From the NCBI RefSeq assembly GCF_052425735.1, contig NC_135769.1:5394001-5458000 (forward strand): 64,000 bases of DNA, read 5' to 3'. The notes beneath the pieces were generated by a model. That model did not search any database, was not told where the DNA came from, and saw only the letters and a list, made by a program, of their open reading frames with translations. The translations under genes and the position numbers were made by a program. Origin of the DNA: Oculina patagonica (taxonomy: Eukaryota). Below, piece after piece: positions 29,499-59,629 of this stretch (its first letter is position 1; each line of letters starts with the position of its first letter).

Positions 29499-32400
29499 CT
29501 ATATTTCATAAGAAGCTGGTGAATCGTGCAAATATATTATACGATTCCTTCTCGACTCTGCGGTGCGAAAATTGCCTTCAACGTTTTGCTTACTCGCATT
29601 GTCAGTGCCACTGTTATCAAACATTTTTCTTAGTGTGTCATTCTCTTGTTTTCTAGCAGCAGTTTCTTCCCCCATTTCACATGAAATTTCTACAGATTCT
29701 TCAGATCCTGAGCTTTGCTCTTTCTCATCGTCGAGGTGCACAGAAAACTCGATTGCTTTTGTCGCCTCCGTCTCGAAAAAGGCATAGTTTAATGCCTCCT
29801 CGTAAAACACTTCTCTCTGGTAAGAATGGAAATGCGATGTTTTGAGTCCTTCGGTAGAAAAGTTGCCCTTTGTCAAGTCCAGACTTGCGTTGTCTGGTTT
29901 TGATGCCTTCATTTGCCTTCTCTTCTCCTTTATCGCAAGGATGATGGTTTCGACAATGTCAGGAACGTGTAGATAGTACGTAATGAGAACCACAGCGATG
30001 ACAAATATTATGACCAGAAAAGGAACCAAGTGCCATGGAAACTGCAAGGCTGGTGTGGTGACAGGATCATCCGTTGGGTAGCTTGGGACTAGAGAAAATA
30101 TTTTAACAGAAGAAATGTTTTGTTATTTCTTTGTTTAGGTCATTGCCCCGAAAAAGAACTGAACATAGATTTTTCAATTTTCCTACTGGTTGATTACCTA
30201 AAGGAGACTTAAATTTTGAAATAAAAAAGGTGGGTTCCCCATATTCGTTTAGGAGCAGGAAGATTTTGTATATACCACATAATCCCTTATAATTCCCTTG
30301 CGAATACTGGCAAAGTAAACATTTCCAGTGATAATTTATTTTTCAAACATATGAATTGGTCTGTTTTCGTTTTACAAAAAAAACTTGATCGCTACACCCA
30401 AAATATGAGAAAAATTGAAAGGTCAACACACTCGTTAACGAGAAAGGGACGGTTTATTTTTTATCTCGCGGACTAAGCTGCATAAAAAAAAAAAAAAAAA
30501 GCCGTCATTTTGTTTCTGTGTGCGCGCTATTTACGCGCAAAATTCTGCGCAGTAAGGATGCGCAATGCAATACAGGCCCCATAACCCCACCCCTTAAACT
30601 CATGGTTTTTTTTTTTTTAAACGCCCTTCAATATCCTTAATTTTTGTTAACATTATCATACATTGTTAAGCTGAATGGTGATAATCATAAAGACAAACTT
30701 CAACTTTAAGATATTGACATGAGACCAGATTCACGAAGCTTTCCCAGGTTAACACATTGTTCTGAATCAAAACCTTACCTTACGAGAGATTCATGAATCT
30801 GGCCCCTGGTGTCCCAGTGATTTGTACATTCTGTACATTTTCCCAAGAAATTTTGGGTCTTTACATTTTATGCGTTTTAGCTTCTAAAAGAAAGAAATCA
30901 TTTCCTAACCTGAACTCGATGGCGATAAAGTGGGAGACAAACTCGACAACGACGGTCGGACTTGAAAAGTTGATGATCCGAGTTGCTCTTCAGAACTGCT
31001 TGCCCTTTCAGACTTATCGATTACAACAAGGCTACCAAGGTTCATGGGTGCACTGAAGGTGGTTGCTCCCTTTGCTGTTTTGAGAGAATCCGTTGGTATG
31101 GTCTTGAGTGTGTCGTGAGTACTCTGTCCGTTTGTATGATCTGTGGATGCACTATAAGTTCCTTTTACTGCTCTGAGGGAATCCGTCTGTAGAGTCTTCA
31201 GTGAGTCGTGAATACTTTGTCCATGTGTATGATCTATGGATACACTGTAGGAGGAAGTCGGCTGTGATGTTCTGGGAGAATGCACTTGTAAAGTTTTGAA
31301 TGAGTCGTAAAGACTTTGTCCACTCGTTTGTCCAAGTGTTGGATCTATGAATGCACGGTAAGTTTCTTTTACAGTCGCGAGGGAATCCGTTTGCAGAGTC
31401 TTGGATGAGTCATGAGTACTTTGCCCATGTGTCTGGTGCATAACAGAGTCGTGAGATGCGAACATTGTGCTTGACCCACAACACGTAGAAGTGGCTCTGG
31501 TGGTCGTCGCTTGGACATAAATGGATGTGACATGTTGCTGGTGTGATTCGGTAAAACTGTGAATGGTCATTAGAGTTGCATATGTTGTGAAAGATGTTGG
31601 CAACGAATTAATTTCATTGGACGGGTTGAGGACTATGCTGTGCTTCCCATGTAATGTGCTCCCTGCCGTCAAAGTTGTTGAATAATCTAGAAGAACAAAG
31701 ATATGCATTGAGTCGCCTTTAGCATCAATAAATTCTTTGATAGTTTTTCTGTCTAGATCTGGAATCGAGCAGTTGTCAAGAGGTTGTCCGCTGTCTTGAT
31801 ACTGACGCGGTCCTGATGTTATGGGTTGTCTGTCTATCTGTCTGTCTGTCTGTGTCTGTCTGTCTGTCTGTCTGTCTGTTTAGCAACAATAACAATAGTA
31901 ATGATAACAAAGACTTGGCAAAAAATAAAGCTTTGCAATATGGCCCAACATCGCAAGCTCGTATGCGTATAATATGCGTAAAAATATTTAAATTTACCAT
32001 TCGAACCATCCATAACAGATGCCCGAAAAATGTAGATTGAGAACATTTTACCTGAAGTCCTCGATAGAGAAGAGAAATTAGTGCTGATCATGATTGTCTT
32101 TTCGACAAAACCTACAGTGGCTATTATGGACTTATTCCAACTTGGAATACTTGAGAAAGCAAGTGTGTTTGTGGACGTGTCACCTACAGATGCACTGAAA
32201 TATGCATTTCTTATGCTACTCTTTGAATTGGAGTGGATATGGTAATTCCCTGATTCCCATGACGATGATCCATTGTGGTGGCTGTCTAAACTCGATGCTT
32301 TTGATGTCGAAGAAGTTGAATCAGTTGCGTGTGGTGCAATGCCTGCCGGACCGGTTTGGTTGTGCATGTAAGCCAAGCTATGTAAACTAGTGTATTGCGT

Positions 32401-35400: not shown

Positions 35401-37770
35401 ACGTTGTGCAGCAAAATTATACTAGAGCTCCAGGCTCCTCGGCGATAACTTAAGGGCTCCATGGTTCCGGCCACCCCTCCTCCCCTTTGGGCCACTGGTT
35501 AAACAAGAGTTGATTTTGTCTTCCAACTAACCTTTAAAGATGTTGTATGCACAACGAAATCCATGAAATTCTTTATCCCTATCTGATATGAACCGTATGC
35601 TCATATTTCCATCCCGTTCAAATGTCAGAGAATGATTTAACACACCGCAGTATCTTCCCATCACTGGGGAGTCAGGTGAAGGGCCCGCCAGTATCTCAAT
35701 GAAATCAAAAATGCAGCCCTCCTTGTATTCCAATGCAATTTCGTCACATTCAAGAGTGATTTGCATCGCGGGATGGAGCTGTATCGTCCACAAACAGTCC
35801 ATATAGTTCGGGTAGTTGTTAGGGTAGTTGGGCGGGGTTATTATTCCACTGGTCTGATTTGTATGTACTTTACAGTCACCTAAATGGCGGAAAATAAACA
35901 AGGGATTTTTTGTTTTAAGATACAACTTTTACTTGTTCTCTTTTAGCAGTACCATAAACCATAATAAACAACGAACAGAAAGTACGCCCACTTGATCTCC
36001 AAAAGAACTTGAGTCATGGTTATGCAATTTTTGTATAATACATCTGAAATGTTTATCTTATGTGGTGATGACTTATTATTTGTGGCACTTAGTTGCGCTG
36101 AAATGGCGTCATAAATTGCGAACTCCGCCGTCTTGCAGTTCAAGATATTTGCTGTCAAAAAAATTGTCAGAAAATTACTCAAGTCTCCAAAATGGCTTAA
36201 AAACTAAAAAACCTGGCTCTGTATGAGATGTTTTTAGACATATCGACTCTGGAATGTTTTCTTGACTCACCAGCGTGCTGCAATTGAAAGCCTCGTTGTG
36301 AGGCATCGATGATGTCATCAGAAGCAAAGTGCAATAAAAGATGAGTCCCAGATGAAGTGATCTGCGTAAACCCTGGTGTCCCACAATACCTCGCGATCAG
36401 CGGAGACGCCATGCTGTCTCCATCTCTGATTTCTAAGTAGTCTGTGTCGCATGTTGTCTGTTGGGGGAAAAGATTCACTCAGTACACTTTAAAGACCGTA
36501 ACCACATATAACCAGACTCGGGGAGTATGGGAGAAAGTGAAAGTATACTCCCTTTAATTCTTTCGCGTCCTTTGGCGTCAAATAATGGAGGGCCTGTGAA
36601 CAGTCTATCTGACACTTCGGGTGGTCCTTTACAAGATTTTTGACTGTATCACCCACTTTTATGTTCGACAATGTCACAAGACAGTTTTGAAACTTGAGAC
36701 CTACAAAGAGTCCGCGTCACAATAAGTTTGGCCACTTCGCCCTAGCTCTACATGTGTCCATGTCTTCAACCCGCAGGCAAATCCCCGAACCTCGTATTCG
36801 TCCCTTACCTGACCCCGAGGTTTCAGGCCTTCGTCCCTTACCTGGAGATCAAAAATGGTTATCTTCACTCTATTTCCAGGAGACACAGATTTGATCCATG
36901 TAAGACTTGAGTTCGGAGGATACGTGAAAGGGTAGTCTGGAGATGAAATAGAGCCTTCCCATTCTGTGATGTTTACTGGCTCTGCTGCTGAAATGCAATA
37001 AAGCGAAAGTTAGCAGCGAACAAACCAGTTGCATCTTCCGCCAACGTCCCTCTCGCATTTGAACGTGAAAAATAAATTACCATTATAACACGAAGAACCT
37101 TTAATTTTGGCGTTTACCAAATCTGGCTGAGTGCAGTTATACATTTTGTCTTCTTGAAATATCCGGTACAGCAAAATCCCGCGAGTAAAATTAAGAACCT
37201 GCATTTTTCCAAGTTAGCCTTAAAAGGTTCTTACATAAATGGTAATTAGCACAAATAAAGGCTATTTAGGTTCTTTAGAAGATCTTATTTTCTGAAGAAA
37301 AATATACATTGTTGCTAATGGAAGTTTTAGTGGTATTCAGCCTTTTGCTTATATGAAATTTGCACCATTTCATTTTTTATTTGTGATTTTATCGATAATA
37401 ATATCTTATGATTTTCAACATTAGCATGTTCATTGCAACTGGAGAGAGAAGGCTCTTTGGTGTTTCCAAAGAGGATCCAGAATGATGACTTATTTTAACC
37501 CTAACCCTAACCCTAACAAAAATAAGAACCTATTTCCAAATTTTAGGCTAAAGAGGTTCCTATAAGGAGGGGCTCTAATTGGCTAATTTTAGCCTAACAG
37601 GTTCTTATTAAAAATTAGGTTCTTACCCGCGGGTTTTTACTGTATATTGAATGAAATTTACAACAAATTTTTAGTACACGCTCTAAAACCCCTTTGAAGA
37701 GACTACAGTTCTTACCTTGTGATGACTTGAATACGAGGATGCTTAAAAAACAACAGATAAGAATACATTC
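29499..37770 (-). CDS. Type-I membrane protein: signal peptide, CUB, CUB, TSP1, TSP1, Ser/Thr-rich mucin stalk, TM, cytoplasmic tail (about 1280 aa; ATG exon not located)
   Basis: Minus-strand exons with consistent phases: 37770-37716 (ECILICCFLSILVFKSSQ, signal-like); 36987-36842 and 36457-36271 (CUB1: GSISSPDYPFTYP..CDTDYLEIRDG..IARYCG..LHFASD..RGF); 35879-35532 (CUB2: PPNYPNNYPNYMDCLW..CIFDFIEI..GRYCG..FISD); 34488-34315 and 33733-33551 (TSP1: WTQWTSWTECSQTC..RSRSC; GGYTSWSNWSACHVTCGTG.RNRSRNC); 33431-32052 and 31686-30910 (S/T-rich); 30088-29499 (TM LVPFLVIIFVIAVVLITYYL plus tail, stop at 29499). Confidence 0.88.
31827..31879. repeat. (TCTG)n microsatellite
   Basis: Visible directly, in an intron of the CUB/TSP1 gene. 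Confidence 0.95.
37167..37643. mobile_element. TA-flanked MITE carrying a short (TAACCC)3 telomere-like run at 37496-37517
   Basis: TACAGCAAAATCCCGCGAGTAA ... TTACCCGCGGGTTTTTACTGTA. Confidence 0.7.
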
Positions 37771-42502: not shown

Positions 42503-45500
42503 ATGTCTTCCTATTCAGAAACGTCGAGCGGTAAGTTTCGATACGTTGTTTGTTAAGCTGTGGTTTTGACAGCTAGATGGACAAGTTTAGAGTCCGAAAG
42601 TGGGAAAATACGCCGTATAAACTCTCGCTTGTTTGCATGCTAAACAGTAATGACCTCAAGATCAGAATCTTTCGTTGAAGGCAGTTAACAGATAAATTGT
42701 TTATTGCTGTGAATATCGCTTTCACTTGACCCGAATGCTAAAAGTACCCCGCGAACGACTGCATTCTTGATTTTGGTCGTTTAACGGCATTCTTATCGAA
42801 ATCTTCCACAATCATTGAATACCTGATAAATGTCATTGCAATTTAATACTGCTGTAATTTTAAATCGTTCTTTGAATGTATTAGAGAATTGTTGACAAAA
42901 CAGTGTTGAAGCGTTTTACTTGGTGCAATTTAAAATTAAAAGCTTAATAAAGAGAAAATTTCTTGTTTCTAAACAGAGGAGAGGAGGCGGAGGAGACGTG
43001 AACGCGCCGAGCAAGAAAACTCCGCTGAGCCTGAGGAAATGGTAAAATGGAATATTTTAGTAAACTATGCATGCTAATTATTGCTGCATTGGCGTTCTAA
43101 ACTCCCTCTTTATGCAAGTAATAATTCCCTTTCTGCGTTTAGTTTCGTATTCTGACCAAAATACCGTCTTTGGAAATCGATTTTAGCCAGCCATCTTCAG
43201 ACACAGTTGTTTGGTGTTGAAACAATTAATAAAACTTTTAATTATATGTACATTCCTGAGGTGTGTCATTACCTTCACTCGACACGAAAACGTGCATGTT
43301 CGTATTTGAAGCTCTATTTTAAAACCTCCAGGACTTTCCGGTTGTGGATGCTATTATTATTTTCACTCGTTCGCAGGACAAGATTCCCTTGTTGACATAA
43401 AATCTACCGTATCGCGTATATGCAGTTTGTTTTTAGTGATTATCTTGATTTAATGATCTTATCTCGCTCGATGGTTTGCCGTAGTTGGATGCGTTCGTCT
43501 CGATCTCTTGTCGTGGTCACAAAACAGTAGTGTGTTTGTCTTTCTGAATACAAAAATTCATGTTTAGTAGATTTTGAACTGGGGATGTCAAGCAAACACT
43601 GTCTTTGGACTCCCATAAATTGAATTTAGGGTCAGATTTTGTGGTTTTTGTCAATTACACTGTACAAATGTAGAACAATTTTGATACAATAAAAGGTTTC
43701 GTCTTTATATTCGCTCAAATTATTATATCTATTATTTAGCAGGCTGAGTGAAATTTATCACGTACAAAAACTAGATATATACATGTTTGTGTAACCAATA
43801 TATTTTTCTTTTTGCCGGGAGGGCCGGGAAGGGGGGGATGTGTTACATGCACAAGGTGTTTATGTAGAAAGAAAATGATATATTGTAAATAACTTTGGTG
43901 CAAGTTTAAAGCTCCATGTTTGGCAAAACAATATTAATCTGTTGCCGCTTTCCGATAAAGTTGCAAATTTTGGCTAGTTTGGGACTTAGGAATTTGCCAA
44001 GACTGTGCTGCACAATTCAGTGTACAACAATAATTTCTGCAGCTTGCTTATCTGTAAAAAAAATAAAGACTTCCATTTGGCACAGACAGAAAGAAAGAGT
44101 GCAGTATATTGTATACAGCTATTTCGAGAAACGTTGTCGGAAAAAAGCACAAAACTGCACAAGCCAATCCCTAAAGGTAGTATGGGTAGACGTATTGAGC
44201 TACTGCACGTTTTGAATACTAATGAGATATAACAACAAAATAAGCGCAATTTTCAGGTTTTCTTTCTTTTCAGACATGTAGAAACGAGGTACGTTTAGAC
44301 CCTCTGAAGTTCAGAAGAATTTTTCCTCACTCAAAGACATGCGACAGTAAATGTAAAGCTACAGATATAGGCCTCCTGAGAAGAAAAACAAATTCTCCAC
44401 GTGCAAAAATACAAACTTGTAAATTTCCTCTAGGCCAATATGCAAAATTCCAGTGAATACCCAGACCACCTTTCGGTCTTGTCGCGTGCACTTTGATGTT
44501 TTTTTTTCGACAACCTTTCTCGAAATAGCTGTATAGGAAATGAATATTTATAACTGAAGATGATGACCTGGAAAATTATATATAAAAGAAGCAAAAAATT
44601 GCAAACTAATCAAGTTTAACTTGTGTTTTCACTTTGACCTGGCTTTTGTCAAGAGTAGCAAAAAGTAACTTCATCACAATTTTCTGATAACTAATATAAA
44701 CAATAGACAACCATATTTGTATTTTGGTATTAGACTGGAACTAGTTTGCAATGAAGGCTAATGTGGAAATCTTTTCAAATGCAAATGCAATGAGGCTTGA
44801 TCTTGTTAATGATATTCCCCGCATTAGTCTCCATTGTGCAGTTCCAGAAAATATCCATACTACCCCATGGAAAGTCATTGGAAATTCTGAGGGGATGGGG
44901 TGTAGGGTCTCAAAAACCAAAGTATGGAAATGATCTGGAGTTTCCAGAGGGGTGGGGTATTTAACCTAAAAGCCTTCTGTGGGAGGGGTATGGATAATTT
45001 CTGGAACAACACATTACAAGCTAGTTCCAATCCAATACCCAGAATACGAAAATGGTCTATAACAAATGTCTGACTGACTAGGGTCCCTTCAAAGAGTCAC
45101 AAGAAAACATTTCAATGGAAAATGCCATTGTTTTTTTAAAAAGTTCTCCTCATTGATGGCCATACATTTCTTTTAAAACATGCTAAGAGAATTTAATGGT
45201 TCATCAGGATAGTAGCCAGTCACGCTACTGACTCCAAAGCTCAGTCAGTTTATTATTGATTTTAAAATTTTCCCTTGATGTACAGGCTTATGACTGCCCC
45301 CACCCCTCTGAGTATTAGTTGGTCAGAATTTTGTGAAATCAAAATATCCAGATTTCAAAAGTCACAATTATATTGCATATGGGAATGACAATATTATTTC
45401 TTTTTTAATACCCCTTAATTTAATTAGTATTCGCCATTATCTTATTCTTTAAATTATACAGTAGCTTTGCAGTTGTCAAAAAAGATAAATATTCAAATAT

Positions 45501-48500
45501 CTGGGTCATGGTTCATTTCCTGTTAGTCTTTTCTGTTTCAATTTTTAGACAAAATGAAAGCTTATTTTATCTTTTATGTAACTTGAAATTGTTTTTGAGT
45601 TTATGATGAATTGAAAAATGTAAAAAAGGGAAATGCACTCCTTGAGAAAAGCATAGTGTGGGTGACAGCTGTGCTCTTCCTTGAAGAGCTGTTCATTGAG
45701 AAGCTACAAGTAAAAAGTTCTGGATCTTTCTTTGACATAATTCTTTTTGCATAATAGCTTTTTAAGAAATTAAATATTTGAAGCACTAACCTGTCATAGA
45801 TTCTTTGTATTTAGCCTTGTCATATATTTCTCTTCTTGTCGCCTTTGGATTCAACAACTGATCTGCAGTCAGCAACAGCACTGCCAAGCTTTATACATGT
45901 AACACGCTTCTTCCATCCTTAGGCATAAAGACTCCTTCTGTCAGAAAGCTTCATGTAGCACTTGTGAATTAGTTTTCTTTTATTTGACTGTGCTTTTCTT
46001 CATTGTGACATTTTGCTTCTTTGGGAAACCTCCTAGAAAAAAAGGAAATACACACAAAACTTGGTGCCAAGGATTCTACTTTCTATGATGATAAAACAAT
46101 TTCAGAAATGAAACATTTTTTCTGATTCATTTTATAAGGCTTGTAATGGTTATCACAAAGTCATCAAATTGTGCAATCTGTACAGTGATTTCATGTGATT
46201 CCTGATGAAGCATTAAGGAGCCAGTAAAATGCAGACGTACATCTGTAAATATAGTTTCTCCAGTATACATGTAGATCTAATGGTACAAATTACTGAGCTG
46301 TGTCAATTCTTATCTAGCAGAACACCCATCGACATGTAAACATTTCAAGAAAATCATCCCTTTCTATCAATGATTTTGTGTTTGCTTAGCTTTCTTGGGC
46401 ATGTACTTCTTGAAGAATCTTTCAAACAGAAGTAGATACAGTGGCAAATATCTCAGTGGTATAATTATCTCAGTATTCCAGCCCTGCATATCTCCCTGCA
46501 TGTACAATGTACATCACTGGCACAAGGTCGCCTGATCTTTCTTTTAGCAAAATAAAATGATAAAGAAATTTGTACCTGAACACTTGACTGTACACATTGT
46601 ACACTTCTTTGCTTGGACAGGCATCAGTCTCTATTCTTGTATGTGATGGAATGTGCTTGGTTAGTTGACCTATCTCAATGTGTTTAATTTCCACTCCAGA
46701 GTTGCGTGATTCTTGTCAGTGAAAACAGCAACCAAACCCTAATGTCTATATTTACATCAAAGATAGCTGTAGGTTTCATCAGTGTCACAATTTGATCCTT
46801 TGTCATTCTGTTCCAAATTTCATAAGTTTGCACTTCATCAAAACAGATGTAAATGCACTCTGCTGTTATTTCAGGGATTGACTTTTCACATGAAATGTTT
46901 TTAAGGTTCATTTTCAGGTATAAACAGTGTAGCAAGTTAAGAAATCCAAGTTGGGATGCAAAATGTCAATTAATAGCATTGATGTGTTTGTGTAGCCCCA
47001 TGACAATTGGATAACCACAACAAAGAGCAATTGATTGAAACTTGCTCAACAATAAACTAAGGCTTGTTTTGTTGTGGGGGACCTGGGGCTGATGGAAACA
47101 AGAGATAGCCAAAGAAAACTAATGAATGTATGACACAGATTGTAAGCATTCCAGAGGCCAGCTAATCAATACATTAGCAGACGCCTTGGCTGCTGTCCTG
47201 TACTGCTGTTTTGAAGCTCCCTGTCCTCTGCACCTTAATTTGCTGTGATCTTCACAGAGCTCTTTCACCAAGACAAGCTTGCCATCTTGCGTGTAGTTGA
47301 CTCTGTCATTTTAAGTCTTCAGATACTAAAATGGAGGTAGGGTAACATGATTTTTTGCCTTTATCAAATGTGAAGTTGTCATTTACAGAGCAACATGACT
47401 GCTCAATGGAGGCAGGGTCACTCCCTTGAATTGAATCTGTTTTCTAACTCTATTCCAAAGTTCTTCATGTGCAAAATTGCATGAGATCAACTGAAGCTCT
47501 GATTTCTAAACATAAAGGCATTTTATTCAGTAGACATGGAATTGCACTAAAAATTCTAGAGCCAGCCTGTTTCTCTAGTTAGTCTGGTCAGCTCACTGAG
47601 CCTTCATTTATGTAAATTATTTTGTTTACACTGGGATAATCTGTAGCTCAGCATTTGATCACTGCTTACATGTCACCAAAATTTGCCCCGGAGAATAGTT
47701 TCTCGTGTTGTTTTGGCTGTGTTTATAACTTCCATCTGTGCAACAGATCCCATCCATAAATTTCATCTTCTCATGAGAGACCTTGAACATAGTATTTTGC
47801 TTGTTGTGTTACAATGGGGCTCTTCTTGGTCAATTAGCATAAATCTGCTTAGCTGGGGCAATCTGTTCTAAAAGTGAATCTCAGAGATTTCTTTGCTCTC
47901 GAGCCATACTCTTAATATTTATTTTATTTACGTTGTTTGTGTCTAGCCACTTTTGGCATGTGGATGCTACAACAGAAAGGCTCAAAGCCAAATGATGAAA
48001 GCTTATGATAACTGCTGGATGCTAACCCTGAAGTAAATTTGCATTTCGCTCACAGCAGAGTTCCCATTATGGCTTATATTCAACTGTGTGTAATCCATGA
48101 AGGTCTTAGAGTTTTAAAATGTATTTTTTTAAAGACCCTTGCATGCATTTCAGCTCTTGCTGCTTACAGTGTACATGTATCTGTCAAAACTACAGGAAAC
48201 CGGCCTCCTTTTATTTCACAAAATGTTTGTGTTGCATCTGTATTAAACATTCTCGTACAGAAGGGTATCTGTTTCCACTTATAAGAAATTACAACCATTT
48301 TTCTGTTTGGCTGAAACCTTAAAACTGATTTTTGACTCTGTCAAGGGTTTGCAGTGTGAACATTTTTGGACAAAACAATAATTACAGGCTTTTAAACTTT
48401 TCTCTATATTTGGTCATAGTATTTGATTCAGTGGCTTTTTAACATATTCATCCATTCAATGAATCAACCAAGAGGTCATGCCATAAAATGACCCCACCCA

Positions 48501-51500
48501 ATTCTACAGAAATTCCTGAAATGTTTTCTCTGAGCTCTGTGGCTTATCTGGTAGATTTTAGCTCCAAAATGTGCATGGAGTGCTTTAAACACCCAATTAT
48601 TTGATTCTGTAGGAAAACTCATTGAGAAAAACTCTTAATTAACAATTATCTGCATGCAAAAGCATTAGAAACTTAAAGAAGAGGTGAAGCACAGTAATTG
48701 TAGTGTGACACTGTTGCTCTATTTGTATAAAATTGCTTTGTCAAATATCTGCAGTTGTTAAGCTGTTGACAAGAAACCCATGAACTCTTGAAATTTTTGC
48801 TCTGTTGCTGCACTGAACACAATAAGTGTTAAAGTTTACATAAGTTGGAATATTTGCTTTAGTGGATTTGGCGACTGTTCATTTAAAAACATGAGACAGA
48901 TTTTTCAAGTGCTCAGTGACTAATTAGCATTTTTTTAATTTGTAGAGCCATGTATTGTTGAACCAATTTATGATAAATTAGTAAAAAAAAATTTCACTAC
49001 AGTTGTAACATGCAATGTTCTTAGATGAATGTACACATAGATAAGAGAGCATTTTTTTCCTCTTTCCCATTTTGGAAATCAAAATTTCTCAGCAGCCAAA
49101 ACAAATTTGTACTAATTGACATCCCCTGTAATGACAATTTCTATGTATAATTCTGTCATTAATTATTGTTGTACACATTGAACTTATGTGTCCTTGTTTA
49201 ATTGTCTAAAGCTCTAATCATTCAGATCATTGAAATGCAAGCATCTCAGCTATATTCCATGTACCATCAATCAATCACAGCATTATTTTATTGGCATGGC
49301 AGCAATTACTTGCTTCCATGTACATTTTAAACAGCACATGAATTTTGAAGTCAAATTAAATCACATACAATATTGTAAATGCTGATTCAGTAAACTACAT
49401 GTACACTGTATCACTGTAGTCAAGGCCAAGGCAAAGTCTTACTTGTCTGCAATACATGGGAAGAGTGAAAATTACATAATCATGTAGTTTAGCTGGTCAT
49501 TGAAACTAATTGGTCTGTTCCACTGTGATGTTGTTTGCTGTCAAGATNNNNNNNNNNNNNNNNNNNNNNNNNNNNNNNNNNNNNNNNNNNNNNNNNNNNN
49601 NNNNNNNNNNNNNNNNNNNNNNNNNNNNNNNNNNNNNNNNNNNNNNNNNNNNNNNNNNNNNNNNNNNNNNNNNNNNNNNNNNNNNNNNNNNNNNNNNNNN
49701 NNNNNNNNNNNNNNNNNNNNNNNNNNNNNNNNNNNNNNNNNNNNNNNNNNNNNNNNNNNNNNNNNNNNNNNNNNNNNNNNNNNNNNNNNNNNNNNNNNNN
49801 NNNNNNNNNNNNNNNNNNNNNNNNNNNNNNNNNNNNNNNNNNNNNNNNNNNNNNNNNNNNNNNNNNNNNNNNNNNNNNNNNNNNNNNNNNNNNNNNNNNN
49901 NNNNNNNNNNNNNNNNNNNNNNNNNNNNNNNNNNNNNNNNNNNNNNNNNNNNNNNNNNNNNNNNNNNNNNNNNNNNNNNNNNNNNNNNNNNNNNNNNNNN
50001 NNNNNNNNNNNNNNNNNNNNNNNNNNNNNNNNNNNNNNNNNNNNNNNAAATATTCCTGCTTGTTTTTAGATCAATAATCTTCGTACCCAAGTTAAGAACA
50101 CAGAAGAGGAGAACCAGCGCTTAATCAAGGAAGGAAAGTAAGTTTTTGTGTTTGTACATGCTAAAATTCAAGCTTGGCTAGTTTCTTTTGTACACGAGAC
50201 AAAACTATTGTGTGTACGCGGGCTTTTAACTAGTCGAGGGTATCGAAACGAAATGATGTGCCCTTATTGTGTATTTAAAGTTAAATGTAGCTTCATAACC
50301 TTAAATGTTACAATAGAACTTTAAAAACATACCTTAAGAAAGAATGAGACTTTGTAAAAGTCCTTTGTATTTTCCCGTACTGAGCATTCGTTTCTTGCAA
50401 ACGTTCTCCTCAAGTTGTCACGTGACTTTCCGTGGCGGGAATTTGGCTTGCACCGCCTGCGCAGGCAGATTTTGTGGGGTAGCCCTCGGGGTAGTATGTA
50501 CGATGTGGAAGAAATACAATTTCTTGTAATTTAAATGCAATTTGTTTTTCTTCAGGAAAATGGCTCCACAAAGAACAGTGGTAAGTCGTGTTATTACAGT
50601 ACATTTATTTGTTGATTTTGTTATTCTGATTTCTTTCCAGTATTGATCATATAAGAAGATTCATTGTTCCAGCCATAGCTAAATTTGTTGTTAATTTTCT
50701 TTTTTTCTTCTTTCATAAACAGAAGAAGACCCTTCCACCAAAGGTGAATTAAATAACATAATCATTAATGTACAAGGCTACGGTTAGCTAAGTACATGTA
50801 TATGGAAACTTAGTATATAAACGAGAAGGGACCTGGGAACTAGATGCCACCTGTGATAACCTGAAGTGTTCTGTTGAAGGGAACTTAAAAAAATCGAAAG
50901 GAGTTTCTTACATTTAGAAAAATTAGGGACTTGTTTTCTAAAAATTGTGTGGGATGTACTTTTGCTTTAATTTCAACGGATTGGACTTTGGTTGGGGTGT
51001 AGAATAAAAATTCCCAAAAGTGTTAATACCAACAAACCCTTTTGTTGACGGCTTTCACTTTTGTCTATCTCGTCCAACAGAAAGGAAACTTTGTAAACGT
51101 TGTGCGTAAAGCCCAGGCCGCCGCATGGGAGGAGAAATTCATGGCAATGAAGGCAAAGCAGAAAGAATCTAACAAGGTCAGTTTAATAACAAGTTGTTTA
51201 ATACACTCAACTCATGGAAACGAGTACCATTTTCGGTTGCCTTCGGCATTTTCGCTGAGCGCGCGGTGATCGTCAGAGGTTGCTAGGGCTAGGCAACGAA
51301 CCTCGTGCTGTTTACTGATTGGTCTATAGGAATCGTGAACTCTTCGGTTTCATTCACGAGGGTTTGCCCAAAATGGTACTTGTTTGCAGTCCACCCGTAT
51401 TGTAAATGGGTGTTCTGATACTTGCAGGGAGTTCAGAATTCATTCGGGGTTTTCCATGTGAATGAATGCTTGGAAACTTTGCGCGTTTTGTAATTAAGTT

Positions 51501-52402
51501 CGATCCAATATCAGGGGCAAGTGTAATACCATTTGGGTTTCGCGGTTAGGTCCAATTGCTTTTATCATTGCAGAAAAGAACATTCAATGTGTTTCTCTAA
51601 CGAAACAAAACCCGAATCAAAACACTTTAGACAAATGATGTAATTTGTTGAAAGCAAGTAGTCGATCACATCACGATATTGTTTCTAACAAGTGCTGATG
51701 TTTCACAAACCTTTTTCGCGACTTCATTTACTCGAAACTTCGGAAACACGCGATTTTAAAACCGTCCAACAACAGACTTTACGACGAAGAAGGTCCAATG
51801 TGGGAAAAGCCGTCGTGATGGAATTGTGGATCAGGAGAAAATAAAGTGATAAAAAAGGTTCGTTGAACGGGCAAAAAACCTCAGTTTTATGCAAAATATT
51901 TCGCGTTTGTAACTTTTACTATAAAATTCGTTTCCTATAAAGACAAAAGTTGAGCTCTTTGTAACTCTGGGTAACGCGTAAATGTTAACACTGTAAATTT
52001 TGTCCGTTACAGATGAGCGAAGAACTCATGAGCAAAATGAACCGAGTCAAGCGCACGGACGGCCCTCTGCTCAGCGGACTGAAGAAGGGCAAGAAGGACA
52101 AGAAGAAGGATGAAAAAGAGGCCGCCCCAGCCTGGTCAAAGACCCAGCTGAAAAAGGGAGGCAGCAAAGGATGGGAAGAAGGCAAGAAGGAAGGCGAGAA
52201 GAAACCCGATTGGTCAGGACGTGTGGCTCTTAAAAAGACCGAGAAAAAGGATGCCGGAGATCTGGGCGACAGCAAGCGACAGGACTGGCGGGATGGCCTG
52301 AAGAAAGCTCCCAAAAGCCCTGGTGTCGAGGGAGGCGAGGGTGACCCGGAGTGGAAAGGTGTGAGCCTGCGCACAACCGGCCGTCACGACGAAGATGATT
52401 AA
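42503..52402 (+). CDS. Troponin-I-like, Lys-rich putative actin-binding protein (partial; middle exons probably in the N gap)
   Basis: Phase-consistent exons: 42503-42530 (MSSYSETSS), 42977-43041 (EERRRRRRERAEQENSAEPEEM), possible 15-nt micro-exon 44274-44288, [gap 49548-50047], 50070-50137 (INNLRTQVKNTEEENQRLIKEGK), 50556-50580 (KMAPQRTV), 50723-50743 (KKTLPPK), 51081-51176 (KGNFVNVVRKAQAAAWEEKFMAMKAKQKESNK), 52013-52402 (terminal exon with EKKPDWS and QDWRDGLKK). AATAAA at about 53250. The gene structure is well supported; the product call rests on remembered motif similarity. Confidence 0.7.
44702..45061. mobile_element. MITE with a nested 'TTCCAGAAAATATCCATAC' MITE (44836-45012)
   Basis: ATAGAC..GTATTTTGGTATTAGACTGGAACTAGTTTG / CAAGCTAGTTCCAATCCAATACCCAGAATAC..GTCTAT. 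Confidence 0.7.
45600..48000 (-). pseudogene. CpG-decayed coding-like relic (dead gene or transposon ORF) antisense within an intron
   Basis: Minus-strand segments read as protein interrupted by stops, many of them TGA in Arg/Gln-rich context, e.g. 46032-45791 GFPKKQNVTMKKSTVK*KKTNSQVLHEAF*QKESLCLRMEE..IQRRQEEKYMTRLNTKNL*Q with AG/GT flanks, and MAREQRNL*DSLLEQIAPAKQIYAN*PRRAPL* near 47900. The region is strongly CpG-depleted. Confidence 0.35.
49548..50047. other. Assembly gap (500 N) inside the troponin-I-like gene
   Basis: Run of N. Confidence 1.
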
Positions 52403-53249
52403 ACGCAAACTTGTTTAGGATTAGGTAGTCTTGCTACGAAAACAGGTTTTCTTAAAGCATTTTAAAAGCCAATTTTTTCGGCTCTTTTTGTATGAATTTT
52501 TTTCTATTATTAAGCCCGTTTAAGCCTTGTAGTTAAACCGAACCCGTAGAAAGTGGCTCAAATGAGCGCAAAAAGGAAGTAAAAGGTGTTTTTTTGGGTA
52601 GCTCCCACCCTCTTACCTCCATAACTCTGTACGAAACTAGAATTCTTCTTAAAATGCCACAATGACAAAAAGCACGTGGAATTAGTTAAACCCTTTTAGC
52701 CATGTGGCTACCATACAAATTCTCCTAACTTTTCTCCATACAAAATATACAGCACTGGTAAGAAGAATTTGTTTTAGTGCTGATCGAAAGCGAGATTCTC
52801 GTATCTACTTTGTGTAATACTGGGTGAAATAGTGAGGAGAATTTATGTGTGGATCACTTTCGCGGCTTGAAGGGTTAACAGTCGGTACGATATGTAGTTT
52901 ATGGAGTTAAAAGGGTCTTGAATCATTCCTTCAGTTCACTTATAATGCATCACGAACTCATTGCGTTGCCGTGGCTCGATCGATGAGTGCAGTTATAAGA
53001 GAGCTGGAGGAAAACCGGAAGTAAGTATGGATAAAACAAATGACGGTTGGAACGGATGCTCAAAGTCAAAAAGTTGTTTTTTAAAGTTGTGTAAGTCATT
53101 GTAGTTCTTGTGTAATTTTCTTAGTTTTGCATTTTTATATTGTCTTAAGCGTCATGAGAGTTTTTTAAAGTGAAATATATCCTGTAATCGGGCTGCATTA
53201 AATGTCAGAATCATATCGTTTGTATTTTTGTTTATTTTTTCTATAATTC

Positions 53250-53255
53250 AATAAA
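53250..53255 (+). terminator. Polyadenylation signal for the 52013-52402 terminal exon
   Basis: AATAAA about 850 nt after the stop, followed by GT/T-rich downstream sequence. Confidence 0.55.
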
Positions 53256-53524
53256 GTTCGTTTTGTAGCAAGTCACTGTTGATTGTTTTTGTTGCGTGGT
53301 AGTGTTCAGTCGTGTGTGATTTGTCACGCTTTCGCCATTAGAGTGATTTTATTTAACCCGTGGAACAACATCTAACAATTAGTGCTAAATAGTGACAACT
53401 AAACAAAAGAAAACAATGGAATAAGCGTCTAATAGTATCTATTTGAGTAGTAACTATTTCACGGTTGAAGTAAAATCACTCTAAGGCTTCACATGCAGTG
53501 AAGATTAGCAGTTCGGGATATTCC

Positions 53525-54513
53525 TAGCCTGAGTATCAGGCTTTTCTAAGGGGTAGGGGGAAAAGGAAGGAGCGCGGACGGAAAGAAAAGCCTGACACAG
53601 ACGCTTTAATTCCAGTTTTCCATCCCTCACGGCGTGATAAGCGTCAACCAATCAAATTCATTTCCGGTTGTCACTTGCGAAGCCGGACCAAGATATAACT
53701 GATAAGACACAATACATCTTGCAACAATATTTATAATGCCGATCCCGGCATCAATAAAATGCAAGTAATCAACGTTTTCACGGAACATATATCTTGTCCT
53801 TACACGGCGAAAATTTCGAGAGTTTAAAGCATATCTTACAAATAGAATTGAGCAAAAACAAACTAGCAAAACATGTGGCAAAGAAGTGTGAAACAAACAG
53901 GAAACCACGCAGCGCAGACTATTATGCAATGACCTCTAGACATTTCCTTGGCCACAATCTTACGGCTCTATTTAATACATAATGCCTCTAAATAAAACAG
54001 TGCCCCTCAGAAAGAAATGAGAAGCAAATTACATCGAAAAACCGAATTTAACACAGAACGGCAAGGGTACAAATGTCACAAACGCAAGCCCGTCACCTTT
54101 ATTTTGCTAAAACTTCCAGGACGTCGACTTTCCGTTTCACAAGCAGCTTTCGAGGCATAATTTCTGTCCTCTATTACGTCTAATTCTAGGAAAAACTGTA
54201 GAGCGCCTTCACGAGCCGTTTAGAAGTCGTGGCCTTCCATAAATACACTGAAATAACGCTGAATAACGTCGAGCGAAGTTTTCGTTCACTGTTCGTTCGC
54301 GTGGACATCAGTTCATAGAAGACGCCGTTATGAAATTTTTATTTCCGGCCGGTGGTGTGACGTCAGGGCCCATTGTGAATTACCCAATCAGCGCCACATC
54401 CAGAATCTGGATGTTCGACATGATCCAATCAAAGCGTTTGTGTCAGGCCTTCCTCTCCTCTTTCCTTCCCTACCCTTCCCCCCTCCCCTTAGGAAGGCCT
54501 GATACTCAGGTTA
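53525..54513. mobile_element. About 1 kb non-autonomous DNA transposon with a 9-bp TSD (Mutator-like)
   Basis: TIR TAGCCTGAGTATCAGGC / GCCTGATACTCAGGTTA; perfect TSD GGATATTCC at 53516-53524 and 54514-54522. Confidence 0.85.
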
Positions 54514-55381
54514 GGATATTCCTATATTTAAGGACAGGCATGACGTCACGGACCTATTGTTATCGGGGAAAATGGCGGACGAATGCACCTCACTATTATT
54601 CAATCGATTGTTTCCAGGCTTTCTCAGCTTCCATTCGGGACTTTTAATGTAAGGAGTGCTTAAAAATGTAGAGATATCCCGAACTGATTACTGGACGCTT
54701 CTAGCAGACAAGTGACAAACTTTCGCGCCAAATTAGCAGTAAGGGAAAGCCTGGGTCCAGGTGACTGTTAAACAGTAGATTGTTTTCCTCGAGATACCAT
54801 CGCGCAAGTTAGCCGGAGGCGCAAATAATCGCAGGAACTTCGCGGTGCGGTCACGCTCGACCCTCGTTCCAAACGTAATTAATAATGTTTTCCCTATGCT
54901 TGATTTCCAGCCGTTTCCCAGCCCCTCCTTCCCCCTGAGATTTGAAAATCTAGTTCAGGTTCTCTTAGATTCAATTTCTGCATTCTGGGAGTATTTGTGA
55001 CGAAAAAGATATTGGCCTGCTGCACCAGTCCCCCTTGGCCATCAAATAAACGGCACGCAATGTATGCAGAAGCGATGACCGTGGTTCCGCAAGGGGTCTT
55101 GTATAATTTGTCTCTTTCGTCTACTTTGTATTAGGCTTTTCTAACTGCCCGGGAGTATTTTGCATTTATGAGTTATTCTTGCACTTAGTTCCCAATCCCA
55201 TTCGGTTCTATCGATCGTTCGATCCGCCGCGCATGCAACAGAACCGGTCGACCGCCTCATGGCATAAAGCGATGCCGTCATGACGTCATCGCTTTAAATG
55301 ACAAAAATTCCCTTCACCTCTCCTCATAGGATTAATCAGTAGCTTTCTTACGATCGATATTCCGTCTCGATCTGTTTGTAG

Positions 55382-57856
55382 GGTCCTGAGTGGGCTCGCA
55401 CTGCCAAGAAACATAAACCAATAAGTTCGATCCTCGGCAGACCGAAAGAGCATTCCGAAGCAAAACCGAAGACTAAACCGAAGCCCGATTGGAAGTCGAC
55501 CTCTCTACGAAAGAAAGACCCGCCTAAACCCGCAATGACACAATCGGACTATTGGAAAGAGGCGAGGCCAGACTGGGCCAAGGGAAAGAGTCCTATCGAG
55601 AAACCCAAAGTACCAGACAAGCCAATTGCAAAAGGAAAGGCAAAGGATTACTGGGAAGAGGCGCGGCCAGACTGGAGCAAAGGAAAAAGCCCTGTGGCGA
55701 AGCCAAGTACTGGAGATCTAAAGAAGGTTGAAGAAAAGAAGAAGTATGATTATCCAACGCCAGATTGGGCAACTCGTGTGCGTAGCAAAGATAAGGTGAG
55801 ATTACCTGACAAAAACAACAATAACAACAACAACAAAACGTTTACTGTGATCGTCCGGGGTCAGGGTAGTGTTGTTAGTGACTGACGTTTCGGCGACTTG
55901 ACCGCGGTCGGAAGCACGCACGTTCAGCCTAATTTTCACCTTCAGCTAATCTCAAACCCTTATCTTACTCTGTCTGGCGCAAAAAAGTGAAAGGTGAAGT
56001 GCCTCCCTTCCGCTTGGCCGTGGGAGATCTGAGTTCTAGCTATATAGATTACCGCTCACCATCAATAGACCTCAATAGTCCTTTTCAGAACTACCCTCAT
56101 TCGCGGACGATTACACTTCATACGAACTTATCTTTTGGGTTTAAAATCTAGTTCAAACAGACGAAACAAAACAGCGTTAACAACAGCAAAAACAAAAATA
56201 ATCAATAAAGGAACTGTAACAGTGAAAGCATTGTTTCCTTCGTAATAGAAAGGCTGTCTGGTATGATAAAATCCCTAACTTAGCTGGCGTGTTAGATAAT
56301 TCAAAGAATCTATTATCAATAACAAAAAATAATTCAATTTAAGAAGTTGGCTGTATGATTGCATCCCTATTTCGTTCCAAGCGCCTCAGATCCTCTGACA
56401 ACCCTCTACCTTAAAGCCTTAAAGCGCACTGTTATTTTTTATTCATTGACAAAGGGAATATCCACTGCATAAAACATTCCGGTTTAAAAGCTTTTGCTGA
56501 TTTTTAACTTCTTTGTCCCCTTTTATTAAGGCCTCAGACGAACAAGACGGCAAGAAAAGTCTTTTGAAAGCCGAGTTGGAGAACATGTTTGGGAAACCCA
56601 AACCGAAAGTGGTCAGTATTAAATTGTTTTAAAATTTCATGGAGATGGAGCTCCTTACTGAGTGTCGTAAAATGCAAAGCAAAGTTATCACATTTGGCAG
56701 TGCAATCGACAGTGCAATCACAATTAGCCATGTTCTAAACGAGCAGGGGACTGGGCACGAACATATTTTCTCTTCGGTACAAACATTCAATATCAATTGA
56801 ATTGAAAAATGGGGCATGTCATCTGAAAAAGCATCCAAAAATTAGTAATTTCACCGAATTTGATTGTTATTGGTTTAAACCCAAAGGCATGGTATACTTT
56901 TAGTATGGATTGGAGGGACAGGCGTCCTCCAATCCATACTAAGCTCTCTTATTTTAAAAGTGTACCATGCCTTTGTGTTTAAACAAATAACCACCAAATT
57001 CGTTAAATTTACTAATTTTTCGATGCTCTTTCAGATTACGTGCCCCATTTTCAATTCAATCGATATTGAATATTCGTACCAAGAAAAAAATATGTTCGTA
57101 CCCAGTCCCCTGCTCGTTTAGAACATGGCCAATAAAAGTAAATGGCCCTTGAGCCGAGGATGCCTAGGGACTAGGCTGTTGTTCAGCTTTTTTAATTTTT
57201 TTAAGTCCTTATCAGATCCAACGTTAAAACAAATGTATGACTATCATTAGGGAACATAGTAATTCAAAGTAATTTTTGCAATGTTTTATTTCCCTTTTTG
57301 CCCAACAAACAGAAAAGACGCCATTCCTCTGAAGACATGGCGGAAAGTTATCGCGCGAACATACGGTGAGTGAAATCAAGTTCCTTGAATGCGCCTTTTA
57401 GTTTAGGAAAAGCACGTATGGTAAAGGTTACTCACCTTAGATCAAAGGTGTGTTGAGCCTAAAACCTGCGTTGGAGCCTATATCCGGTTTCCGTAATATG
57501 AAGTGACTTGGAGTATTTCTTCTCCCCTGCATGTAATCATCGTTCATCGTTCAAGGAAGTCGTTTTCTCCTTATGTAGCTTTACTCATCTATAAGATGCG
57601 ATAACTAAGCAAAATACAGAGAAACAAATGTGCTTGCTGAGTTTCTCTGCCGTCGAGACCCGTACAAAAGCGGATAGAAGGGAATTTGTATTGCCAGTGC
57701 TTTCTTTGCTAACGTACTTCAATAATAAATTTTAAATCCTCCGACAGAAAATTTGCCGACCACCGTCTAAGTGTCAGAATGAAAACGAAACATCGACCTT
57801 CATCCAATCCCGTCAGGCAGCTGTTGTCACGTGATGATATCAGGAGTGAGCTGTGA
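55382..57856 (+). CDS. Lys/Pro-rich PDW-repeat exon block ending in a supervillin-like motif; probable alternative 3' end of the upstream gene, or a separate gene
   Basis: Exons 55382-55795 (GPEWARTAKK..KPDWKS..DYWKEARPDWAKGKSP..DYWEEARPDWSKGKSP..PDWATRVRSKDK), 56531-56611 (ASDEQDGKKSLLKAELENMFGKPKPKV), 57313-57365 (KRRHSSEDMAESYRANIR), 57748-57856 (KFADHRLSVRMKTKHRPSSNPVRQLLSRDDIRSEL*). All are GT-AG, with phases 0,0,2 consistent. Confidence 0.75.
56726..57130. mobile_element. About 400-bp foldback/palindromic MITE in an intron
   Basis: GCCATGTTCTAAACGAGCAGGGGACTGGG ... CCCAGTCCCCTGCTCGTTTAGAACATGGC; the arms are complementary nearly to the centre (TTAGTATGGATTGGAGG/CCTCCAATCCATACTAA). Confidence 0.85.
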
Positions 57857-58044
57857 GCTACCAACAGGAAACACAAGGCACAATTAACAAACCTAACAAC
57901 ATAACTAGCAAAGCAGCGCAATCAAATTCAGTGCAAGAGAAGATGACTTTATCCTCTTTCAGTAAAAGTAAGCGTGCACCATAACTTGTTTGTGCACGAT
58001 AAAGCATGAAACAGTTGTTAATTGGTTTGAATCAAACAAACATT

Positions 58045-59561
58045 CATCCTCGGAGACCCAGGGGCAGTTAGTGGGGCGAGGAAAACGCGAAAATGCGGGT
58101 AGAAAATAGCGCGAAACTGCGAGGGAAAAAATCAACATATAAAAGTTGTATTGACTGAAAGTGCCCCTGGGGAAAGAGTCTTACCAGACCAGTTCAAAAA
58201 GCTCTCTGAATACTGCCTCCTGATTGGGCAGAAAAATCTTTTGTATTCCCTTTGTATTATTCTGCCCAATCGGCGACCAGCCTGACTACAGTCCTTTTGG
58301 TGTGTTCTCACACGAAATATGTACACAAAGCCAGTTCGTTCGCCATATCTGTCTTGCTTGTTCGCCAAGAATTTGCTCGGGAAGGAAAAGTTTCGGCTAG
58401 TGCCTCCCCTGGTTGAAAACGTCGAAAGTTTGACGGCCATGCACGCGGAGAAACGGCGGATTCTTCAGATTGTGGTTGATCGCAGGTATCGTAACACTTG
58501 CATGCTGTTTGCGAGTTTTAAAAGTTTGTGTGCGATATGCTAGTTGCACTGCTGTAATGGATGCATGTTTTCAGATTTTTTTCTGGGAAGATCAATGACA
58601 GCTTAACGCGAAACTTTTCCAAACAAGAGTAATTTTTTTACGAACAAGCCCGGCAGATGTGTCAAGCGGCCGTCTAGCTACGCGTGCAAAACGTGCAGCA
58701 GCGATTCCTAAGTTTTTTATAGGTGAGATAATAGAAGATCGATCGCAGCTGGAAGCGAAACTACAACAACAAAAAAAGTTTATTTAAACAATCATATTAT
58801 TTACAATATTTTTCACCTCTCACAATTAGCCTAGTTATTTGAGGCGGGAGGTGAAGAAGAAAATGAAGAAGAAAAAAAAAATAAACAAAGTTACAAAAAG
58901 GTAATACCTTATCTACATTAAAGAAAAGATAGTAATAAGAAAGATAACTTCGAATATCATAGCAATAAATTAAAATAACAATGTGTTTTAAGTTACATTA
59001 AGCTAAAGATTTTAGGAAGTCAAAACTATTTCCAAACAAACTTTCAAGACCTTGCATTTTGTAAATTTTTCCGTCGATCGACCGATTAGATACGCGCGCG
59101 TGTAATGCGTGCAGCACCAATTGTAGCACTCAAATGACGGTCATATTTCCCGAAGACAAAATGTTCCCAACACTTCACATCCAAGTTGAGGAGGCACTAG
59201 CCGAAACTTTTCCTTCCCGAGCAAATTCTTGGCGAACAAGCAAGACAGAAATGGCGAGCGAACTCGCGAACGTGGCTTTGTGTACATATTTCGTGTGAGA
59301 ACACACCAAAAGGACTGTAGTCAGGCTGGTCGCCGATTGGGCAGAATAATACAAAGGGAATACAAAAGATTTTTCTGCCCAATCAGGAGGCAGTATTCAG
59401 AGAGCTTTTTGAACTGGTCTGGTAAGACTCTTTCCCCAGGGGCACTTTCAGTCAATACAAATTTTATATGTTGATTTTTTTCCTCGCAGTTTCGCGCTAT
59501 TTTCTACCCGCATTTTCGCGTTTCCCTCGCCCCACTAACTGCCCCTGGATCTCCGAGGATG
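58045..59561. mobile_element. 1.5-kb foldback/Mutator-like element with about 360-bp TIRs
   Basis: 58045-58405 is the near-perfect reverse complement of about 59190-59561; flanks ACAAACATT / ACAAACAAT (9-bp TSD, 1 mismatch); explains the mirror-image ORFs 58132-58440(-) and 59229-59474(+). Confidence 0.9.
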
Positions 59562-59629
59562 ACAAACAATCAACATATCGGTTGATTTCGTCACCGAAGT
59601 ACGTTGCTAAGCAACATAACATATTCCTG

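Follow-up and report, generated by a model that had tools for sequence, protein, structure and literature searches.

A probable alternative-last-exon gene with two C-terminal tails in the coral Oculina patagonica

In the stretch of the Oculina patagonica genome analyzed here (64,000 nucleotides, hereafter the window; NC_135769.1, positions 5,394,001 to 5,458,000, forward strand), two blocks of coding sequence carrying tryptophan motifs follow one another downstream of the same coding exons, raising the question of whether they are two interchangeable ends of one gene or two neighboring genes. A first-pass annotation, made from the sequence alone, had proposed the former, namely a troponin I (TnI)-like core with two tails, possibly specific to different muscle types. 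Our analysis leads to the same architecture with a probability of about 0.7: the stretch is probably the 3′ portion of one plus-strand transcription unit with two alternative tails. The encoded product is a Glu/Arg-rich coiled-coil protein from a highly expressed gene, which ranks among the top-expressed in the runs examined. Our verdict on the locus is that of an ordinary alternative-last-exon gene, whose splicing mechanism is itself ordinary.

One donor and two acceptors

The shared upstream part comprises three plus-strand coding exons that encode the end of the coiled-coil core, eA (50070–50137), eB (50556–50580) and eC (50723–50743), whose in-frame concatenation is free of stops and which match the proteins P0030, P0032 and P0050 (the last being the Stylophora GenBank model PFX18709.1). 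They are followed by the shared exon eD (51081–51176, plus strand; 96 nt, 32 codons), which ends in AAC AAG/GTCAGT and whose amino-acid sequence is 100% identical in five other corals. Its donor at 51176 is phase 0 and is the branch point of the tail switch. RNA joins eD upstream to 50743, in four of four runs, with loose ends at 50722 bearing eB sequence, and downstream to either 52013 or 55382. Thus, a single donor is connected in RNA to two different acceptors.

The proximal acceptor (...TTACAG/ATG at 52013, phase 0) opens the coding part of tail 1 (52013–52402, plus strand), a Lys-rich segment of 129 codons (52013–52399) with five Trp motifs that is closed by TAA at 52400–52402. The transcript-derived protein P0030 covers the core together with this tail. 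Homologue searches with tail 1 returned mostly 129-residue, exon-only open reading frames because the proximal exon begins with ATG. Downstream lies a conserved 3′ untranslated region of about 850 nt (52403–53275, plus strand) with ATTAAA at 53197 and AATAAA at 53250, which is 72–84% identical to Desmophyllum up to 53298. RNA depth is unbroken to about 53270 and then drops, and poly(A)-selected raw reads concentrate at 52850–53250. The proximal exon is terminal, with its own stop, poly(A) signal and RNA 3′ end.

The distal acceptor (...TTTGTAG/GGT at 55382, with an in-frame TAG directly upstream) is likewise phase 0 and leads into four plus-strand exons that remain open to TGA at 57854–57856, together encoding the tail 2 of about 219 residues. 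Their limits were set by reading the sequence and by tblastn with orthologues. Exon a (55382–55795) has 138 codons, phase 0 at both ends and seven Trp motifs, and exon b (56531–56611; 27 codons), joined to it by 55795>56531, has tblastn matches in five orthologous coral loci. Exon c (57313–57365; 53 nt), whose splice sites were read from the sequence, carries a basic KRRHSS site and matches the proteins P0050 and P0004 as well as the orthologous loci. Exon d (57748–57856) ends the frame and holds RKFADHR...KHRP.SNP...RSEL, the best-conserved motif of this tail, which alone recovers sea-anemone and coral proteins in a profile search. The AATAAA closest to TGA 57856 was read at 58880, past an inverted repeat. 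Tail 2 is single-copy in the O. patagonica genome, and its protein is identical to GenBank ACROYT_G036869. The phases, the stop followed by AATAAA and the open distal block had all been read in this way by the first-pass annotation.

The same annotation had proposed looking for both junctions in RNA. Here, we used four runs, three as contigs (X1, X2 and X3) and one as raw reads, which were taken as RNA from their exon/intron depth pattern. The joint 51176>52013 was dominant and present in all four (depths of 3958, 3693 and 208, plus 7 raw reads), while 51176>55382 was found in one data set, X1, as a single GT..AG contig with a depth of 10.1 and a short side of 28 nt. In X1, the distal-exon contigs have depths of 13.4–15.1, with a variant contig at 4.5, so that the joint reaches about half or more of the distal exon depth, and this route therefore supplies a large share of the tail-2 RNA there. 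The joint 55795>56531 was present in X1, X2 and X3, and the distal exons stand at about 0.1–1.3% of the proximal exon depth across these three contig runs. Coverage at the 5′ edge of the distal exon is scant or absent in X2, X3 and the raw-read run, and 51176>55382 is therefore neither repeated nor contradicted there. Among the best-supported loose ends listed, at low coverage, no joint into 55382 other than that from 51176 was found; a second 5′ partner may be among the 105 less supported ends outside this listing.

Collectively, a simple scheme would accommodate these joints. By default, the donor at 51176 would be spliced to 52013, giving tail 1, its TAA and its 3′ untranslated region, with cleavage at the AATAAA at 53250. 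Rarely, the proximal acceptor and poly(A) site would be bypassed and the donor joined to 55382, 4.2 kb downstream, which would add the four exons of tail 2 and move the stop to TGA 57856. Whether the proximal acceptor and poly(A) site are used would then be the regulated step, tail 2 would be made without a separate promoter, and the tails may serve as alternative interaction modules.

One gene or two

The main rival to the single-gene reading holds that the blocks are two tandem genes, with tail 2 driven by a separate promoter and opened by a short first coding exon that evolves rapidly and lies in the spacer, and 51176>55382 being a read-through chimera. Read-through (conjoined-gene) chimeras typically link the last donor of the upstream gene to the first acceptor of the downstream gene, the form that 51176>55382 would then have. 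Consistent with two genes, most public annotations, among them the GenBank/RefSeq records of Oculina, Desmophyllum, Stylophora (RefSeq) and Pocillopora, list tail 2 as a separate gene, the blocks are expressed at levels about 80–800 fold apart, and the connecting junction occurs in a single contig. However, the annotated starts of these tail-2 genes all differ (MLQ, MLCSKVTKLFK, MGR, or partial), and that of Stylophora RefSeq falls within the tail-1 3′ untranslated region, upstream of its AATAAA. Across the annotated species, a conserved start codon and first exon belonging to the tail-2 unit were not found. Moreover, the junction depth of 10.1 in X1 is comparable in magnitude to the 13–15 of the distal exon, rather than a small fraction of it.

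The spacer itself (53260–55380) was the place where such a first exon should lie. About 1 kb of it is a repeat element with 90-nt terminal inverted repeats (53522–54516, no strand assigned), recognized by inverted-repeat detection and placed outside the gene's coding function. RNA contigs at this element show internal-deletion joints and many loose ends, which indicate other copies elsewhere. RNA depth is 0 at 54650–54849 in all four runs, and it rises to 10–145 at 54850–55250 in three of them. This transcribed material would suit a second gene, and a start site within the interval, or an independent promoter for tail 2, is possible; the signal itself looks repeat-derived. Against Desmophyllum, no DNA conservation was detected between 53298 and 55306, while intron sequence is conserved, at a dS of about 0.6, over the 59 nt that follow the donor and over the 198 nt and 76 nt that lead up to the proximal and distal acceptors, respectively. 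No joint from a spacer exon into 55382 is listed, in agreement with the claim of the first-pass annotation that 53260–55380 holds no coding first exon. The one candidate it had named as a possible independent 5′ exon, at 54500–54760 (ATG open reading frame at 54572), has zero depth from 54650 and no joint to 55382, and was rejected for these runs.

The coding properties of exon a bear on the same question. No Met is present in the distal first exon of Desmophyllum, Stylophora and Porites, the sole Met of exon a in the window is codon 52 and is not conserved, and the preceding 51 codons have a dN/dS of 0.175, indicating purifying selection. Because of these three observations, tail 2 is shown to be unable to start translation alone and to depend on an upstream coding exon.

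Desmophyllum, Porites, Pocillopora, Stylophora and a further coral contig preserve the arrangement of eD before tail 1 before exons a–d of tail 2. Phase 0 holds for the donor as well as for the distal acceptor in all five of these loci, and in four of the five a stop codon stands 0–2 codons upstream of this acceptor. An Actinia contig includes 1.2 kb upstream of tail 2, which is too short for synteny. In Nematostella vectensis, the RefSeq model XP_032231830.2 (‘troponin I isoform X17’) carries this core, 57% identical to the coral one over the aligned part, fused to a tail-2-like end. Its C-terminus matches the coral tail-2 profile (E = 5e-12), and the terminal motif RKFADHR...SNP...RSEL is part of the match. 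This computed model has no eD-like exon, so that the branch point may differ there, and it does not have the PEWAR with which tail 2 begins in corals. The isoform number X17 implies many annotated splice forms in Nematostella. A model that fuses the core with tail 2 is at odds with two tandem genes, and these sequence comparisons favor a single gene. We consider two tandem genes unlikely. One upstream part with two tails exchanged by a last-exon switch, as the first-pass annotation had it, is thus upheld by the junctions, synteny, phase, lack of Met and Nematostella isoform.

Two further alternatives fare worse than tandem genes. Tail 2 might be splicing noise, reached occasionally when the proximal exon is missed and yielding no functional protein, as the distal depth of about 0.1–1.3% of the proximal could suggest. 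Yet its exons stay open and show conservation across six scleractinians at a dN/dS of 0.175, its C-terminal motif is conserved out to sea anemones and all four exons retain their splice sites, making noise a very improbable account. The other, a serial protein in which tail 2 would be appended to tail 1 through a cryptic phase-0 donor (GGT/GTGAGC after 52360) spliced to 55382, is barely credible: exactly such a join is found in PFX18709.1 and the equivalent GT exists in the window, but that protein is a computed gene model, no joint leaves about 52360 in the four runs despite depths of about 300–4100 in the three contig runs, and a contig is continuous through this position.

The tails and the troponin I label

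Under the single-gene reading, the splice would exchange tails of related character. The P-[DE]-W motifs that had been noticed in both tails number two in tail 1 and five in the first tail-2 exon, and they are enriched relative to residue shuffles (p = 0.0006 and p < 0.00005, respectively). The similarity between the tails is weak by pairwise comparison (BLASTP E = 0.002). The ESM Atlas model of tail 2 has a pLDDT of 0.55 and a pTM of 0.15, and the tail is therefore taken as disordered. Both tails are rich in Lys, predicted to be disordered and composed as arrays of P-[DE]-W-type Trp motifs, to which tail 2 adds basic Ser sites and the strongly conserved C-terminal motif. ESM Atlas searches gave scores of at most 0.79 for the core and no usable match for tail 2.

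The TnI-like part of the earlier proposal fared differently, as the label finds no support in Pfam or PDB searches. The Pfam Troponin family PF00992 did not match P0032, P0030 or the window exons at E ≤ 10, nor the full-length Nematostella isoform P0034 at E ≤ 1, and Pfam searches with full-length orthologues and with all exons of 20 residues or more returned nothing meaningful. Searches of all PDB chains at E ≤ 10, by phmmer with P0050 and by hmmsearch with the core profile A2, retrieved generic coiled coils and no troponin; a smooth-muscle tropomyosin chain scored no better than E = 0.48. The name ‘troponin I’ stems solely from NCBI's automatic naming of the Nematostella orthologue, and our literature search found no paper that deals with this cnidarian gene or with its isoforms. 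According to the literature, including reviews, bona fide troponins are absent from cnidarians (PMC13485128, PMC12305882). The gene bears the only ‘troponin I’ label in this phylum, from which troponins are held to be missing, and is highly expressed; its true products must therefore be known before its function is tested.

Implications and comparison with known systems

For annotation, the result is a useful correction to several coral genomes: what is listed as a ‘hypothetical’ or ‘uncharacterized’ tail-2 gene in Oculina, Desmophyllum, Stylophora and Pocillopora most likely represents the distal 3′ exons of the gene before it. Single-cell data based on 3′ tags score the two 3′ ends as two ‘genes’, of which LOC111339132 is a tail-2 example, and existing coral and anemone atlases could therefore already show the use of each tail by cell. 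A functional interpretation is far more speculative. The gene might be a pre-bilaterian thin-filament or cortical-actin regulator akin to a hypothesized TnI/TnT/caldesmon-like ancestor, in which Trp-anchored basic repeats would dock an EF-hand protein (calmodulin- or TnC-like) or actin, and, in some rare cell type of contractile or neural nature, the switch would replace a plain repeat tail by one bearing phosphorylation-type sites (KRRHSS, HRPSSNP). We regard this idea as doubtful, a long shot. If true, it would amount to cnidarian isoform-level control of contraction, which the orphan-gene annotation of tail 2 has so far hidden from view.

Three known systems offer points of comparison. Like bilaterian troponin I (PF00992), the protein combines coiled-coil segments with a charged N-terminal region. 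Bilaterian TnI also contains a GDWRK region, which the Trp in basic context recalls here.

The layout of the proposed switch is of the calcitonin/CGRP (CALCA) type, where one donor chooses either a proximal terminal exon with a stop and a poly(A) site or distal exons with another stop. The coral gene shares this alternative-last-exon arrangement and its differing protein C-termini, whereas the protein is unrelated and usage in whole-animal RNA is extremely skewed to the proximal exon.

At the level of the protein, a parallel is tropomyosin, a coiled-coil protein of the cytoskeleton that is highly expressed and changes its interaction end through alternative last exons. The likeness consists of the coiled coil, the high expression and the alternative last exons, with no sequence relation beyond the coiled coil; the ends of tropomyosin are short and helical, whereas the coral tails are long, predicted-disordered arrays of Trp motifs.

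Exon layout and the two terminal blocks

The locus is best read as a single gene with an alternative last exon, a reading to which we assign a probability of roughly 70%. The DNA of the window is eukaryotic, with a G+C content of about 38% and introns bounded by GT..AG. On the plus strand, in-frame concatenation of the shared coding exons at 50070-50137, 50556-50580 and 50723-50743 with the last shared exon (51081-51176; 96 nt, donor AAG|GTCAGT, phase 0) gave a stop-free translation across all four, with the C-terminal sequence ...KAKQKESNK. Orthologues have one or more further core exons 5' of 50070 (positions 18-94 of a profile of the orthologue coiled-coil core); these were not visible in the readable sequence of the window, 43042-50069 included, and searches of the same genome placed their matches on two different contigs (C1262 and C248). 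A block of N (49548-50047) forms a gap 22 nt 5' of exon 50070.

Two phase 0 acceptors lie downstream of the shared donor. The proximal one, TTACAG|ATG at 52013, opens tail 1, an ORF of 129 codons that ends with TAA at 52400-52402 and is followed by the poly(A) signals ATTAAA (53197) and AATAAA (53250). The distal one, TTTGTAG|GGT at 55382, stands immediately 3' of an in-frame TAG and opens tail 2, which consists of exon a (55382-55795; 138 codons, open) and, from sequence reading and orthologue matches, exons b (56531-56611), c (57313-57365) and d (57748-57856, with TGA at its end). The common phase of the donor and both acceptors, the proximal stop followed by AATAAA and the distal block open from its acceptor had been described in the first-pass annotation, and all were borne out. 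A search of the Oculina patagonica assembly found tail 2 as a single copy.

Several further features were observed around these exons. At 52101, within an A-rich part of the tail-1 coding sequence, three reads of the poly(A) library terminate in a run of A, most likely reflecting internal priming rather than a genuine 3' end. An inverted repeat (58044-58407 and 59190-59562; near-perfect arms of ~370 nt, 96-99%, with ~780 nt between them) begins ~190 nt 3' of the tail-2 stop codon and may lie within or directly past the distal 3'UTR. Elsewhere, long minus-strand ORFs in 30900-37200, comprising a Ser/Thr-rich repetitive ORF (31834-33489), thrombospondin type-1 repeat-like exons (34304-34513) and CUB-like domains (35527-35925 and 36197-36478), suggest, as judged by eye only, a secreted or adhesion-type gene upstream.

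RNA junctions at the shared donor

Runs obtained from a reads search, with a share of words of 0.20-0.25 that is consistent with exon-only content, were mapped onto 50650-56649; they comprised three contig runs from three studies (X1, X2 and X3) and one raw-read poly(A) run (X23). Since the depth in the contig runs reached hundreds to thousands over exons and was close to zero over introns, these runs behave as RNA. The 51176>52013 joint was recovered in all four runs (depth 3958 in X1, 3693 in X2 and 208 in X3; 7 raw reads in X23). The 51176>55382 joint, which the first-pass annotation had named as its check, was found in X1 as one GT..AG contig of depth 10.1 and was absent from the joints listed for X2, X3 and X23, where there was hardly any coverage at the start of the distal exon and the joint could be neither repeated nor refuted. 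Splicing within tail 2 (55795>56531) was seen at depths of 13.4, 4.9 and 4.0 in X1, X2 and X3, respectively, and not in X23, while across the three contig runs the depth of the tail-2 exons amounted to about 0.4%, 0.1% and 1.3% of that of the tail-1 exon.

The main rival is a pair of tandem genes joined by a read-through chimera. Against it, the junction depth of 10.1 in X1 compares with 13.4-15.1 for the distal-exon contigs (one variant contig, 4.5), and thus, as read from this single junction contig, the shared donor supplies a large share, and not a trace, of the RNA extending into tail 2. The spacer between the tails also appears empty of a separate first exon: among the joints listed for the four runs, none led from the spacer to 55382, the depth over 54650-54849 was zero in all runs, and nothing in 53298-55306 could be aligned between Oculina and Desmophyllum. 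Among the listed joints, none left the end of tail 1 (~52360).

The spacer carries an element of ~1 kb (53522-54516) with 90-nt terminal inverted repeats that are 77% complementary. Over it, several joints in the RNA contigs delete internal sequence (53545-53593 > 54476-54491) and loose ends are numerous, a pattern that other, shorter copies expressed elsewhere would be expected to give. Just 5' of the distal acceptor lies a transcribed stretch, 54850-55250, which three runs cover at a depth of 10-145. Numerous loose ends diverge at 55079, one run shows a skip of 108 nt, and the stretch is probably a dispersed repeat.

Orthologous loci and the start of tail 2

Tail 2 is a separate gene in other coral annotations, which would fit tandem genes, but its annotated starts are non-conserved and implausible: the beginnings all differ (MLQ, MLCSKVTKLFK, MGR, or none in partial models). 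In Oculina patagonica itself, part of GenBank ACROYT_G036869 matches the tail-2 exon with full identity; the annotation of that entry gives a protein of 167 residues that starts at an internal Met (55535). The Stylophora RefSeq start (ATG GGG AGG|GT, L005:21925) lies inside the tail-1 3'UTR, 5' of an AATAAA that aligns with window position 53250, and on this placement is not credible as an independent start. The entire region is a single gene in PFX18709.1, the original Stylophora model, but with an unsupported join of tail 1 to tail 2.

We compared loci from Desmophyllum, Porites, Pocillopora, Stylophora and one further coral contig. The order of shared exon, tail 1 and tail-2 exons a-d is kept in 5/5, with a shared-exon protein that is 100% identical and with the shared donor and distal acceptor in phase 0 throughout; a stop lies 0-2 codons 5' of the distal acceptor in 4/5. 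In Desmophyllum, Stylophora and Porites the distal first exon is devoid of Met, and its sole Met in the window (codon 52) is not conserved, leaving tail 2 without a conserved start codon of its own. The 51 codons 5' of that Met evolve under a dN/dS of 0.175 relative to Desmophyllum (dN 0.11, dS 0.63). Together, these three observations indicate, at the level of sequence, that tail 2 requires an upstream coding exon.

Relative to Desmophyllum, at a synonymous divergence of about 0.6, the 59 nt after 51176 and the 76 nt before 55382 are conserved. The tail-1 3'UTR and the 198 nt of intron before 52013 (both within 51815-53298) retain 72-84% identity despite this divergence, a level of conservation suggestive of regulatory constraint, whether on splicing, polyadenylation or mRNA stability. 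In a search of 1.84 billion representatives with a tail-2 profile, the sole long protein retrieved was XP_032231830.2 of Nematostella ('troponin I isoform X17'), in which the same coiled-coil core is joined to a tail-2-like C-terminus.

Two loci showed local irregularities. In Desmophyllum, a segment of exon a is partially duplicated ~170 nt 3' of the exon (L001:11955-12077), the copy having 66% identity to window residues 23-62. In Pocillopora meandrina, the matches to tail 1 and exon a (L003:2931-3321 and 4904-5318) are spread over two or three frames, pointing to frameshifts in both tails of that assembly, either errors or real changes.

Protein identity and type of switch

In orthologues, an Arg/Glu-rich N-terminal region and the coiled-coil core are followed by tail 1 or tail 2. 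The proposed TnI-like nature of this core did not hold: Pfam searches of the gene's exons and orthologues gave no match to Troponin, and no troponin chain occurred among the PDB matches of either a single-protein query or the core profile. Cnidarians are described as being without bona fide troponins (PMC13485128, PMC12305882). The label fails every test run, its sole support being the automatic NCBI name of the anemone gene. The P-[DE]-W motifs noted in both tails were confirmed, with 2 copies in tail 1 (shuffle p=0.0006) and 5 in tail 2 (shuffle p<0.00005). Lys is abundant in both tails, disorder is predicted for each (pLDDT 0.55 in the Atlas model of tail 2), and the two share weak similarity (BLASTP E=0.002). 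Guessing from composition only, the Trp motifs or the motif conserved at the end of tail 2 might serve actin or EF-hand-protein binding, or phospho-regulation.

In the single-gene reading, transcripts would by default terminate in the proximal exon and encode tail 1; on a rare route, the proximal exon and its poly(A) site would be bypassed and donor 51176 spliced to the distal four-exon block. The alternative last exon proposed here for the coral gene is of the same type as that of calcitonin/CGRP.
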